Below, in pieces: positions 8,219-57,184 of a stretch of DNA of 64,000 bases. The stretch's first letter is position 1, and each line of letters begins with the position of its first letter. Made by a program: the position numbers and the translations under genes. The notes under the pieces were generated by a model that was given only the letters and a program-made list of their open reading frames with translations, ran no database searches and had not been told where the DNA came from. Location of the stretch: the sequence record LR756504.1; one strand, 5' to 3'.

Positions 8219-9206
8219 CAAAGGCATTTGGAAGCATGAAAAGATTTTTGAGTCTGATGGGGTATATTTTATTGGTGGTAATTGTTCGCTTACCCACATT
8301 TTTTTTTAGTCCTCTAATTCCTATTTTTAGATGATTTGTTATTAAGTCGTGAAGAAAGGAGAACTCATCGGGTGTTATATGATTCTCAAACCAATGATAA
8401 AATTCATCAAGCTCTTCATAAGACATATAAGAAACGTGTGGTTGTAAATATGGACATATTCTAAAGAATTCTTTATTTATACTTTCACCATTCTCAATTT
8501 TAGATTTTGCATAAACATCAAAACACCTTTGAATACCTATTGTAGGAGGTGCTATAACGTAAGAATCCTCTTTTAATTCAGTTTCAAAGACAAATGCTTT
8601 CTTTTCTTTAGAAAACCATCCCATTATATCCTCATTTCTATAAATATCCATATTAGCTCTAACTAATTCAATATCAACATTTTTAATATTTTCATCTTCT
8701 TTATATTCTACATTTACAGTAAGAACTTTACCTTTTGGAAATGTTTTTTCTCTAATCATGTAAATCATCCACAATCTATCACCATTGAATAAATTTGTGT
8801 AATCACCTGGTGTTCCATCTGGATGATTAAATAAAATGCAATTTTCTAAAATGTCATTTATTTTATCTTTAAAATCTAAAATGCTTGATTCATCCAATGT
8901 GGCAAAATGTTCGATTTCTTTTACTTTTAAATCTCTAAATTGAATTCTTGTACCAGTATAATAAAAATCACCCATAGGCAAATCTGATAATATAACATCT
9001 TCAAACATTATAGATTTCGCATTATTAGCTATCACGCTTGGTTTTGGTATAACCCTTGGTTTTTCTGCTTTAGGAATAAAAGGAGATACTACGGACTCTT
9101 TAGGTTGTGTATTAGGTAATGATGGTGGCGGTGTAGCATTATTATTTGGTTGAGATAATAAATTATCCAAATAATCTTTATATGAGTCTTCTTTTTTACT
9201 TGACAT
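8199..9206 (-). CDS. Baseplate hub subunit (gp26-like)
   Basis: IQFRDLKVKEIE and DRLWMIYMIREKT motifs; directly downstream of the tail tube gene. Confidence 0.65.
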   Translation of the reverse strand: MSSKKEDSYKDYLDNLLSQPNNNATPPPSLPNTQPKESVVSPFIPKAEKPRVIPKPSVIANNAKSIMFEDVILSDLPMGDFYYTGTRIQFRDLKVKEIEHFATLDESSILDFKDKINDILENCILFNHPDGTPGDYTNLFNGDRLWMIYMIREKTFPKGKVLTVNVEYKEDENIKNVDIELVRANMDIYRNEDIMGWFSKEKKAFVFETELKEDSYVIAPPTIGIQRCFDVYAKSKIENGESINKEFFRICPYLQPHVSYMSYEELDEFYHWFENHITPDEFSFLHDLITNHLKIGIRGLKKNVGKRTITTNKIYPIRLKNLFMLPNAFDVLIKK

Positions 9207-54492: not shown

Positions 54493-54861
54493 TTAATGTG
54501 ATTGTGATATAAGCTTCTTTCTTGATTTGGTATCAAAGATATAATTATGATTATATTCGAAGTATATGTAAAAATGATTCGTAGTTAAATTTTTAATGTG
54601 TACTATCTTAAATCCTATTTCTTTTTCCAAAATATCTACTAATTCTTTAATAGATTTCCTCTTTTCGATAGAATCTGTACTAAAACAGGTAGATATAAAG
54701 TTTTGACTATTGGACAATTCCTTTAATTTGTTCTTAACAGGCTTATCCATATGATAATTAACATCGAATATGTTAATATCAAAAGCCTTAATATTCCAAA
54801 TAGAGGAATCATTAAAGCTATTTAAGCTGTTAAATATTATATTTTTTATATTTTCTACCAT
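54493..54861 (-). CDS. Hypothetical protein (start probably 54861)
   Basis: TAATTTTG box at 54874-81 places the start at MVENIKN. Confidence 0.55.
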   Translation of the reverse strand: MVENIKNIIFNSLNSFNDSSIWNIKAFDINIFDVNYHMDKPVKNKLKELSNSQNFISTCFSTDSIEKRKSIKELVDILEKEIGFKIVHIKNLTTNHFYIYFEYNHNYIFDTKSRKKLISQSH

Positions 54862-54915
54862 ACAAATAATATACAAAATTAGTGATATTTTTTGACATTT
54901 CCAAATAAATATATA

Positions 54916-55020
54916 GAAATATAAGTAGTTAAATAATTACAAAGATATAGCGTTAGGACCGTTATGGCACGGCAATGTGTCTGAAAACCCATCAATTCGC
55001 TCCTGATGGGTTTTCTCATT
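54916..55020 (+). ncRNA. Candidate small RNA containing a segment complementary to 23S rRNA H69
   Basis: AATATATA motif at 54908-15, no ORF, locally GC-rich 54950-54983, terminator at 54983-55015. Confidence 0.35.
54983..55015. terminator. Bidirectional intrinsic terminator
   Basis: gaaaacccatca-attcgctcc-tgatgggttttc. Confidence 0.75.
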
Positions 55021-55024
55021 TTTG

Positions 55025-57184
55025 TTATTCGTCTTTAACTATAATTTGTTTCACTTTTCCGTTCGACACCGATATCGGACATTCTACACTATTCGAAATA
55101 ATTAGAACTTTACCTTTTATTTTACCTAAATTTAGATTATCGACGTAGCCATCAGTAATTAAAAGTGTATTAAATTCATTATATTTTTCCGCAATTAATT
55201 CAAATGCTGGATTAATCACAGTTCCACCACCACCCTTCGGCACAACTCTCTGTAGTTCTGCCATAGACTTAACGTTTTCTACAGAATGCACTTTTGTATC
55301 ACAGAAGATAAGATTTATTTCAATATCACTTCTAAATATAAAGGATAATGCTTTACTGTAATAACCACTCATAGAACCAGATGTATCGAGAATACAGTTT
55401 ATCTTAGCACCTAATTTTTTATTACCTTTTAACCCAGATATACCTTTACGGTTAGGTCTTGTAATAGATTTAGTTTTTACATGTCCTTTTATAAATGATA
55501 CACCTCTCTTAATTTCTTTAAGATAATCTTTCTTCTTTTTTTGAAGTTTTTCAAGAGTTCTTTCAATATCACCTGAAATCAAACCACGTGCTTTTAATTT
55601 TTCTTGAACATCTTTAACCATCTGTTCTCTCAATTCATCAGGTACACCATCTTGAATATGTGAATCTAAAAATTGTCCACCATTTTCATCTATATCCCTT
55701 AGAATATCTTCTACGCTATGACATTCTTGGTCATTTTTACCATTTTTGCCATATCCACTCTTATTTCCTTGATTTTCCGAATTTGCATCTGATCCACCTC
55801 CCATATTATCATCTTGAGATTTATCAAATTTATATTCAATGCGTCTATTTATACCCCTTTTATATTCTGATTTAAGCAATTTCTTATAAGTAGCATATTC
55901 TGGATTGTTGGCTACTTCTGCTCTTAGAATAGCAAGTGTATTATCATCAGTATCATTTTCAATAATTAATTCTGTATCCCCTTTACCTGATGCTTGAATC
56001 AAATTATTAGCAAGTCCAATAATTGTAGTCTTAGACTGTGCCATATTAGGTAGTGTAAGTCCTTTAACTCTCAAAATATTTCTAAGAGTATTTTCGTCCA
56101 TTTTATCCAATTCGGTAAAGCGATATTCTTTAAAAAGCATATCTATTTTATCACCTTGTTGACCATCTTCAACTTTTTTTAGTTCAACTTCTCTTTGTTT
56201 TTGTACTGTTTTATTTGCAATTTCTTCATATTTGAAAATAAATTCTAATTTATCATTTTCAGATTGGGTGGCTTCTTGTTCCATAATTGCCATACATAGT
56301 GTATATTTATCTATGTACATGTCAATATTTTCAATTACAGCATTTTTAAATAAATTAGCTCTTCTTTCTGATAAATCTTGATTATAATTAGCAGGAGAAC
56401 CATCAGGTATGAAACTATCAGTGTGTCCTATTACTTGGAAAGGAATACCTTGTTGCAAAGAAACTAATGCCTTTCTAGTAAAATTACCAATATATTTTTC
56501 ATACTCAGTTTTACTTTTTTCTATTAGAATGTCAGTAAAAATGGCGTGTTGTCCGTGATATTTTGTAGTCAATTCTATATGAGTTGGTCTATCTTCTTTT
56601 ACAAATAGTTCTCCAAATATTCTATTATCTTCTTTCTTTTGCTTTCTTTTTACAAATTCTTCTTTTCTACCTTTAAGGTAATCATATAGAATTTCAAATA
56701 CCCATTCACCCTCGTATTCTTTTGGTATAAATAATGCACTATTTCTACCAAAATGATCTTTTGGTATATCTACGAAATCGGGTTTAATATCTTGGATAAT
56801 AATCTGATTAATAATCATATCCTGTGCGATATTAGATAGCTCGTGATCAAATCCACCCATCCTAGTTCTTCTAGGGTGATTTAAAAGTAAATGGAAAAGC
56901 TCGTGTATATTCAAAAAATTTACTTGTTCTTGAGTTAGTTTGTCAATAAACTCAGGATTGTAGTAATAATTCATACCCTTCGATGTTACATTTACACCCG
57001 CTGTTTGTAGTTGTGGATCATTTGGGCGACAAAAGAAATTAACATGTAGTAAAAATTCACCATAATAAGGTAAATTTATTTTAGAATTTAACAACATCAT
57101 TTCAATGTTGTGTATGATTTTAGGGTGAAGTTCTGATGTTGCTACTGACATGCTATATTCCTCTTTATTTATACCTTTTATCAT
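55025..57184 (-). CDS. DUF2201-type metallopeptidase-vWA protein with inserted OmpA-like domain
   Basis: TAGV, HELFH (HExxH), NIAQD..IN; IGHTD, N..LSERRA, NRRIE; LDTSGSMS, GGGT, TDG. Confidence 0.8.
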   Translation of the reverse strand: MIKGINKEEYSMSVATSELHPKIIHNIEMMLLNSKINLPYYGEFLLHVNFFCRPNDPQLQTAGVNVTSKGMNYYYNPEFIDKLTQEQVNFLNIHELFHLLLNHPRRTRMGGFDHELSNIAQDMIINQIIIQDIKPDFVDIPKDHFGRNSALFIPKEYEGEWVFEILYDYLKGRKEEFVKRKQKKEDNRIFGELFVKEDRPTHIELTTKYHGQHAIFTDILIEKSKTEYEKYIGNFTRKALVSLQQGIPFQVIGHTDSFIPDGSPANYNQDLSERRANLFKNAVIENIDMYIDKYTLCMAIMEQEATQSENDKLEFIFKYEEIANKTVQKQREVELKKVEDGQQGDKIDMLFKEYRFTELDKMDENTLRNILRVKGLTLPNMAQSKTTIIGLANNLIQASGKGDTELIIENDTDDNTLAILRAEVANNPEYATYKKLLKSEYKRGINRRIEYKFDKSQDDNMGGGSDANSENQGNKSGYGKNGKNDQECHSVEDILRDIDENGGQFLDSHIQDGVPDELREQMVKDVQEKLKARGLISGDIERTLEKLQKKKKDYLKEIKRGVSFIKGHVKTKSITRPNRKGISGLKGNKKLGAKINCILDTSGSMSGYYSKALSFIFRSDIEINLIFCDTKVHSVENVKSMAELQRVVPKGGGGTVINPAFELIAEKYNEFNTLLITDGYVDNLNLGKIKGKVLIISNSVECPISVSNGKVKQIIVKDE

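Follow-up and report, generated by a model that had tools for sequence, protein, structure and literature searches.

Small RNAs that derive from 3' untranslated regions and share the terminator of a parent mRNA, such as CpxQ, SroC, and DapZ, pair with mRNAs, need Hfq or ProQ, and come from Proteobacteria. The phage element described here would resemble them as a short RNA at an mRNA end, with a seed near its 5' end and the intrinsic terminator of the parent as its 3' end, but both of its modules match rRNA, one of them within the terminator loop, and its carriers are predicted Bacteroidota phages or relatives of such phages. While a base-pairing RNA sharing a terminator is a known kind of RNA, what appears to be new is the apparent target, H69-H70 of 23S rRNA, together with the second module borne by a loop and the phage carriers. 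To our knowledge, natural RNAs that control ribosomes by pairing with bacterial rRNA are essentially unknown, and the take-over of translation by phages is understood mainly via proteins. H69-H70 forms bridge B2a and represents a stretch of 23S rRNA that no host can mutate; it is also a target of homing endonucleases. The group I introns at L1917 to L1931 in 23S and the R2 site in 28S are located in what we take to be the same invariant large-subunit stretch. The phage element has in common with the I-CeuI site, these introns, and R2 the stretch of rRNA or rDNA that is exploited, and its modules are split at the I-CeuI cut; unlike these systems, which use contiguous DNA, its halves are permuted and separated and display an RNA-like strand bias.

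Further comparisons concern the arrangement of the two modules. The box C/D and H/ACA guides of archaea and eukaryotes likewise possess short stretches complementary to conserved rRNA, which are bipartite in H/ACA RNAs, but the phage element is devoid of boxes and its guide order is the reverse of that in an H/ACA pocket; we know of no box C/D- or H/ACA-type guides in bacteria or phages. Inspection of the aligned members for ACA and RUGAUGA/CUGA boxes revealed none, and the guides did not follow the order anti-3' then anti-5'. Arrangements of the H/ACA, C/D, group I guide, and hammerhead type were rejected because of the wrong guide order and the absence of boxes. In group II introns (EBS2/EBS1-IBS2/IBS1) and in the T-box-tRNA interaction, as in the phage element, a 5' guide faces the 5' part of the target and a 3' guide the adjacent 3' part, with the guides presented in loops; the phage element, however, has no ribozyme or riboswitch body and comprises ~80 nt with a terminator at its end. 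PeSL cassettes of T4-type phages are present in many copies per genome and show no rRNA resemblance. The element shares with them the character of a conserved intergenic promoter/stem-loop unit beside varying genes, but it is single-copy and rRNA-matching. Finally, an antisense PNA is able to invade H69 and thereby block translation (Kulik et al. 2017, cited in PMC12828698). This PNA has the same target, the H69 strand of 23S, but is synthetic and contiguous, whereas the phage element would be a natural RNA, bipartite and permuted.

LR756504.1 (= WNFQ01000001.1) is the genome of an uncultured phage, with 636,363 bp in GenBank. Al-Shayeb et al. 2020 list it among their largest phage genomes, as a member of the Mahaphage clade with a predicted host in the Bacteroidetes (PMC7162821). 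The stretch analyzed here, referred to as the window, comprises 64,000 nucleotides of this record, to which it is 100% identical, and contains 23 N letters, all of which are outside the region studied. The IMG/VR record that includes the window (G000) is 288,572 bp long, and its classification there is 100% complete, with inverted terminal repeats; it probably represents a partial or fold-back assembly of the 636-kb genome. A previous sequence-only reading of the window had proposed an intergenic phage small RNA complementary to H69, framed by a late promoter and a terminator. The letters and positions it quoted (TTAGGACCGTTATGGCACGGC at 54953-54973, AATATATA at 54908-15, and the hairpin at 54983-55015) proved correct; on the plus strand, TCATTTTT lies 3' of the hairpin. 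The E. coli 23S sequence it had given, including the 13 Watson-Crick pairs, agrees with rrlH, which reads GCCGTAACTATAACGGTCCTAAGG and has ATAACGGTCCTAA at 1916-1928, within GCCGTAACTATAACGGTCCTAAGGTAGCGAAATTCC. The region is also locally GC-rich, as had been stated (49% at 54950-55016 versus 26.6% for the window), and it is overlapped by trivial ORFs only. The features of the element and its neighbors are collected in Table 1.

Table 1. Coordinates of the window copy of the element, its parts, and the two adjacent genes
Feature	Position in window	Strand	Description
Whole element	54941-55023	+	~80 nt
Module A, UUAGGACCGU	54953-54962	+	complementary to 23S 1919-1928 (ACGGUCCUAA, the 3' strand of H69 plus CCUAA)
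Hairpin A	54959-54973	+	CCGU 54959-62, loop UAUGGC 54963-68, ACGG 54969-72, plus C54973
Spacer, AAUGUGUCU	54974-54982	+	
Terminator hairpin	54983-55015	+	12-bp stem 54983-94/55004-15; loop AUUCGCUCC 54995-55003
Module B, UCGCUCC	54997-55003	+	family consensus UCGCUAC, complementary to 23S 1930-1936 (GUAGCGA)
U-rich tail, UCAUUUUU	55016-55023	+	
Upstream neighbor, 719-aa protein	55025-57184	-	phrog_1314 'HNH endonuclease' over residues 469-694; outside element
Downstream neighbor, 122-aa ORF	54493-54861	-	no family match; outside element

On the plus strand, residues 54953-54973 are complementary to E. coli 23S 1907-1928, with a 3-for-4-nt difference in the loop. Hairpin A of the window is overall an antisense image of H69 (1907-1923), its ACGGC arm being antisense to 1907-1911. 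The sequence-only reading had missed that the terminator loop holds another conserved module, with the consensus UCGCUAC. This module corresponds to 23S 1930-1936, and the window copy matches it at 6 of 7 positions, with a single A-to-C mismatch.

Taken as an isolated similarity to 23S, the flagged site is not significant. Similarity was assessed with blastn-short and with seeded Smith-Waterman alignments against 60 dinucleotide shuffles. The window shares six exact 13-mers and one 15-mer with 23S, and the gapped score of the flagged site (15) was only tied third within the window; the shuffles contained a mean of 2.85 matches at least as good as the site, and 88% of them had one or more, so the caveat already voiced, that the 23S match alone could be due to chance, was well placed. 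Within the CDS of the 719-aa protein, positions 55767-55786 match E. coli 23S 1492-1511 at 19 of 20 nt, which is better as a plain match and evidently arose by chance. The predicted hybridization energy of the flagged site is an outlier: RNAduplex gave -34.1 kcal/mol for 54951-54975 against 23S 1906-1930, approximately 4 SD below the mean of 60 composition-matched shuffles (-24.6 kcal/mol; SD, 2.3; minimum, -31.9), and the minimum for 400 random 25-mers of the window was -27.4 kcal/mol. The proposed pairing thus stood out against shuffled controls in energy but was equaled by them in similarity.

The decisive evidence beyond chance is the recurrence of the element in other phages. The two modules are found again in the nearest relative contig (L007), whose orthologue of the 719-aa protein is 56% identical; there they are located 2.6 kb away from this orthologue and beside unrelated genes, in the form of a hairpin with ..GTAGCGAC.. 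in its loop, followed by CAAACACCTT and by GCCGT-AACAAGTA-ACGGTCCTAA. It was the only one of 112 loci with 719-aa orthologues in which a synteny check detected the element. A scan of IMG/VR with the pattern GCCGT-N5-9-ACGGTCCTAA yielded at least 119 loci, making 121 hits with the window and L007. Approximately half of the pattern hits represent chance, as expected for 15 fixed bases. Module B was absent from the search pattern, and TCGCT was used to sort the members. Among the matches listed, TAGCGA was present within 60 nt on the H69-5' side in 61 of 121 hits, versus a single case on the other side, and the 36 unique members possessed 22 different terminator arms. The element recurs in dozens of unrelated uncultured phage contigs, representing ~16 lineages among the matches listed. 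Pure chance resemblance in an intergenic hairpin, to which the roughly three equally good 23S matches per shuffled window would lend some plausibility, has next to no probability in view of a bipartite element in ~16 phage lineages, the bias of module B by 61 to 1 among the matches listed, and member scores of 55 to 78 bits (see below); at the level of the family, this explanation is refuted.

On the antisense strand, the family plan consists of UUAGGACCGU, a loop of 5 to 9 nt, ACGGC, a spacer, the terminator hairpin, and a U-run. Module A was identical in every family member retrieved; as both module A and the ACGGC arm were demanded by the search pattern, the invariance of these two segments partly follows from the search itself. 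The loop of hairpin A is variable, often resembling UAUAGUU or UAUAGCU (the H69 antisense being UAUAGUU), and the spacer spans 2 to 9 nt in most members but is longer in the L119/L130 type, the second hairpin following 2 to 26 nt downstream of hairpin A. This terminator hairpin has 5 to 12 bp, and its loop always contains UCGCU, followed by A in 34 of 37 and C in 35 of 37 cases among the matches listed. Covariation, named in the sequence-only reading as a check, was found for all 7 of 7 pairs of the terminator stem, whereas hairpin A comprises 4 invariant pairs; RNAalifold recovered both hairpins. The MAFFT alignments (A1 and A2) are imperfect in the terminator loop, and a covariance model-based alignment (A3), which mixes members with pattern-only hits, was excluded from the pair counts. 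With the covariance model R1, members scored 55 to 78 bits and pattern-only hits at most 25 bits. Each member locus has one copy of the element. The window copy, which contains module A, a loop in the 5- to 9-nt range, and ACGGC exactly (54953-54973, plus strand), scored 48 bits with an E value of 6e-7 under R1, the window having been part of the training set; on sequence grounds, we regard its membership in the family as firm.

Searches against Rfam 15 gave no match at gathering score for the window region or 15 member loci, with unrelated or terminator-driven weak matches at E values of up to 1, and a full-text literature search that included the motif letters did not find a description of the element. 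Four members (L119, L130, L150, and L146) have module A extended by CC, pairing with G1929-G1930, and feature a downstream word GTTCTTTA(C/T) in sense orientation, with a short module B hairpin far from hairpin A. This subtype may be a distinct branch of the family.

The two modules match adjacent parts of 23S. The 36-nt H69-H70 stretch is the same in E. coli and in 28 of 28 Bacteroidota genomes with an assembled copy (61 sampled). The tip of H68 happens to read GTAGCGA in 23S of some taxa; an origin of module B as a copy of this tip was rejected, since the tip is variable and mostly lacks GTAGCGA in the 61 sampled Bacteroidota genomes. Given this variability versus the identity of the H69-H70 stretch, module B corresponds to 23S 1930-1936. 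By our own estimate, the chance of a 10-mer and a 7-mer matching adjacent same-strand segments of 23S is of the order of 1e-6, and the relation to 23S is therefore real, by descent, function, or both. Together, the modules cover the I-CeuI recognition sequence TAACTATAACGGTCCTAAGGTAGCGA, in permuted order, and their split coincides with the I-CeuI cut, which divides the recognition sequence into the halves ACGGTCCTAA and GGTAGCGA (PMC2790883). A contiguous antisense would place module B 5' of module A; contiguous complementarity or identity across the junction of CCTAA and GGTAGCGA was not found, the modules being permuted and 20 to 45 nt apart.

The correspondence with the two I-CeuI half-sites (PMC2790883) raises the question of a DNA-level site, i.e., a hot spot of recombination or a split or decoy 23S target of the I-CeuI type that would serve a homing endonuclease of the LAGLIDADG or another type. 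Bacterial 23S genes with introns exactly at this position (L244, L246, L253, L266, and L280), a homing-endonuclease gene that in L172 separates the element from the stop codon of the tail-tube gene, and the match of a window neighbor to a PHROG annotated as HNH endonuclease are in line with this idea. However, because the half-sites are misordered and 20 to 45 nt apart, they form no known homing enzyme site; an adjacent endonuclease gene occurs in only 1 of ~16 lineages; the strand bias, the U-tails, and the display of the modules in loops indicate RNA; and many elements may target H69-H70 simply because it is invariant. We therefore consider a DNA-level site unlikely. The gene in L172 (1091-1996) encodes a 278-aa homing-endonuclease-like protein (phrog_559/3339), and in its relatives L121, L128, and L230 the element directly follows the tail-tube gene. 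Regarding the introns, the 23S genes of the Acidobacteriota metagenome-assembled genomes (MAGs) L244, L246, L253, and L266 are interrupted after CCTAAGGT and that of the Acidimicrobiales MAG L280 after GGTAG; these interruptions look like introns at an L1931-type site, beside the stretch mirrored by the phage element.

The orientation of neighboring genes and the position of U-tails provide information on the transcribed strand. Of 44 unique contexts among the matches listed, 32 have flanking ORFs on both sides that run opposite to the H69-sense strand, and tails of at least five U were present in 22 members in the antisense orientation versus 1 in the sense orientation. In the comparison of flanking ORFs, the ORF beside CCUAA ends at a distance of 8 to 36 nt, and according to an ORF table a same-strand ORF of at least 50 aa stops up to 41 nt upstream of module A in most members, the upstream genes encoding tail-tube protein, prohead protease, the large subunit of RNR, a thioredoxin-like protein, several unknown proteins, and one homing endonuclease. 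From gene orientation and U-tails, it follows that the transcribed strand of the family is the strand antisense to 23S.

For one marine member (L120), module A is co-transcribed with the RNR mRNA, at its 3' end. The RNR end was present in 21 seawater metatranscriptome runs, and four of these, each from a different study, contained contigs that were identical to the RNR gene, extended through module A and hairpin A, and ended at 8768-8775, at the foot of the terminator, i.e., before the terminator. The contig of the next gene ended at 8688, and the intergenic region 8689-8767 was uncovered in 4 of 4 runs, which argues for RNA and not DNA as the source. Metatranscriptome contigs carry neither strand nor true ends; the stops within 8 nt across four studies possibly reflect a processing site, a dropout of reads where the hairpin is stable, or a break caused by strain variation. 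Within the downstream gene of L120 (8516-8598), 81 nt are replaced by 87 other letters in a contig found in 4 of 4 runs, suggestive of either strain variation or a related gene.

These orientations also bear on a second proposal of the sequence-only reading, an H69 look-alike decoy RNA made from the minus strand, the coding strand in the window, that would titrate an H69-binding factor or defense. The gene-sense strand of the window indeed has GCCGU-GCCAUA-ACGGU-CCUAA past a terminator with only four U, and read-through would include it. In the family, however, the H69-sense strand is the noncoding strand in 32 of 44 contexts among the matches listed and is not transcribed in most members, variability within the element is highest in the H69 loop, where function and modified bases reside, and GUAGCGA is located 5' of the hairpin, as opposed to 3' in 23S. 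A decoy is accordingly very unlikely, and this part of the earlier proposal is not supported.

The window copy is atypical in two respects, namely, its module B (UCGCUCC) and its orientation opposite to both neighbors. The family context, with the element 8 to 41 nt after a same-strand stop codon, is found in L007 but not in the window. As both neighbors are encoded on the minus strand, a family-type RNA of the window needs its own plus-strand promoter between 54862 and 54950; none was identified in this interval, nor is there a plus-strand gene upstream in the window. None of the RNA runs searched for the LR756504.1 phage contains this phage. For the antisense RNA originally proposed, transcription of the antisense strand holds for the family, with module A joined to an mRNA in the marine member, but in the window itself the plus strand lacks both an upstream gene and a recognizable promoter. 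The window copy may be a stand-alone small RNA gene, or it may have become inverted and at present act chiefly to terminate the 719-aa gene.

The word taken for a late promoter turned out to be nonspecific and AT-rich: the window has 19 occurrences of AATATATA, distributed over both strands. A T4-type late promoter was rejected, since the word is unlike the T4 consensus TATAAATA; its frequency and its deviation from the consensus leave it with zero weight as promoter evidence. Words of the form TAnnTTTG start at 54947 and 54881 on the minus strand, upstream of the 122-aa ORF, but upstream of the window genes this Bacteroidetes-type motif was not clearly enriched (12 same-strand versus 10 opposite occurrences), and consequently no promoter was called on either strand. 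A tRNA-like reading of the element was rejected because ARAGORN detected neither tRNA nor tmRNA genes in the window. Elsewhere in LR756504.1, at ~136,380-136,460 (L366, minus strand), there is a tRNA-like sequence, Glu-like by eye, whose D-arm GGCUUAGGACGGU is similar, not complementary, to module A.

The hairpin at 54983-55015 has the hallmarks of an intrinsic (Rho-independent) terminator, with a GC-rich stem and a U-run, and folds on both strands; a simple terminator scanner missed it because of its 9-nt loop. With an A-run on one flank and a U-run on the other, it can terminate transcription in both directions, the plus-strand tail (UCAUUUUU after UUUUC) being more U-rich than that of the minus strand, and since it begins 10 nt past the stop codon of the 719-aa gene, it is also usable as terminator of this gene. 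The 719-aa protein shows a weak OmpA-like match at residues 214-285. Its ends are conserved and its middle is variable, the orthologues having 435 to 494 aa or ~715 aa, and it is common in huge-phage contigs (75 metagenome and 37 IMG/VR loci, L003 to L117). Relatives of the 122-aa ORF were sought in IMG/VR and in phage records, and none were found.

The member contigs resemble phages of Flavobacterium and Cellulophaga and megaphages, and judged by sequence, the carriers are uncultured phages related to phages of Bacteroidota. The 634- to 735-kb relatives LR756501, LR756502, and LR745206 were searched without finding a copy, so that the conservation expected by the sequence-only reading was borne out by the core kept in ~16 phage lineages (among the matches listed) but not by these three genomes. 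Two exact 10-mers in LR756501 were rejected, being coding-like and having neither hairpin nor module B. In Flavobacterium phage immuto and Cellulophaga phage phi14:2, no element follows the RNR and tail-tube genes, and a match in Flavobacterium FCL-2 was rejected as chance, inside a CDS. The absence from the three large relatives and from the cultured Flavobacterium and Cellulophaga phages implies that the element is dispensable. With a strict two-module pattern, 54 of 55 matches in GTDB representative genomes were true 23S genes, the exception being a Thermoplasmata MAG (L283). The element is present as a single copy both in G000 (288 kb) and in the full 636-kb LR756504.1. As a single copy beside varying genes, it has the appearance of a small gene making use of the 3' end of another, unlike a generic terminator.

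These data also have to be weighed against an ordinary bidirectional terminator plus promoter spacer without rRNA-directed function, in which the 23S letters would be either an old rDNA relic spread as a mobile regulatory cassette or the seed of an mRNA-targeting small RNA. Such a view accommodates the location of the hairpin directly 3' of the 719-aa gene, whose orthologues in LR756502 and LR745206 likewise have a terminator at their 3' ends, the unrelated genes beside the element across phages, including the L139 group with varying upstream genes and a constant element, and the antisense match to 23S beyond the modules in L146, L149, and L182, which would fit descent from rDNA. A generic cassette, however, is expected to recur within a genome, whereas one copy was observed in 636 kb and one per locus in other members; stems, loops, and spacers have fully diverged (22 arms), while 10 + 5 + 7 nt remained fixed in loops and single strands; and if a seed is conserved among phages whose hosts differ, its target must be conserved to the same degree, for which rRNA is the obvious candidate. 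We judge an element without a function directed at rRNA to be rather improbable.

The reading we prefer, to which we assign a probability of about 0.45 and which draws on comparative sequence data, is that the window element is a single copy of a conserved phage RNA that base-pairs with 23S rRNA, either as a small RNA or as a 3'UTR element, and is linked to a terminator. Both conserved modules are predicted to be unpaired, one in a 5' tail or small loop and the other in the terminator loop, while all else drifts. In most phages, the element would form the very 3' terminus of an mRNA, from which it may be released as a 3'UTR-derived small RNA; in the window phage, it would be a stand-alone plus-strand transcript. 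Module A and its hairpin would pair with H69 and the following CCUAA (1907-1928), and module B with GUAGCGA (1930-1936). For the permuted modules to pair simultaneously, a pseudoknot-like topology and the melting of H69 would be required, which speaks against rRNA pairing. The likeliest action would be pairing in free 50S subunits or nascent pre-23S rRNA, with the consequence that large subunits may be tethered, sequestered, or blocked in maturation. The outcome may be a tethering of 50S subunits to the ends of phage mRNAs, a sequestration of free 50S subunits, or a disturbance of late 50S assembly or of the cleavage of nascent 23S by RNase III. Transcription in this phage, pairing with rRNA, and any effect on the ribosome are what we infer from the family.

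In its boldest form, the proposal says that Bacteroidota phages encode, in one copy, a small RNA dedicated to docking via two loops on the universally invariant H69-H70 stretch of 23S, which thereby captures, silences, or re-routes large subunits or blocks their assembly; we put this forward as a tentative idea with the odds clearly against it. If true, it would be the first natural virus-encoded antisense RNA against a functional center of the bacterial ribosome. A phage RNA aimed at H69-H70 would mean that phages have a further way of manipulating their hosts, and it would offer anti-H69 antisense antibacterials a precedent in nature and research on 50S assembly and recycling a handle. Even if the link to rRNA is a relic, the element constitutes an undescribed RNA family with a clear anatomy that is open to modeling and survey.
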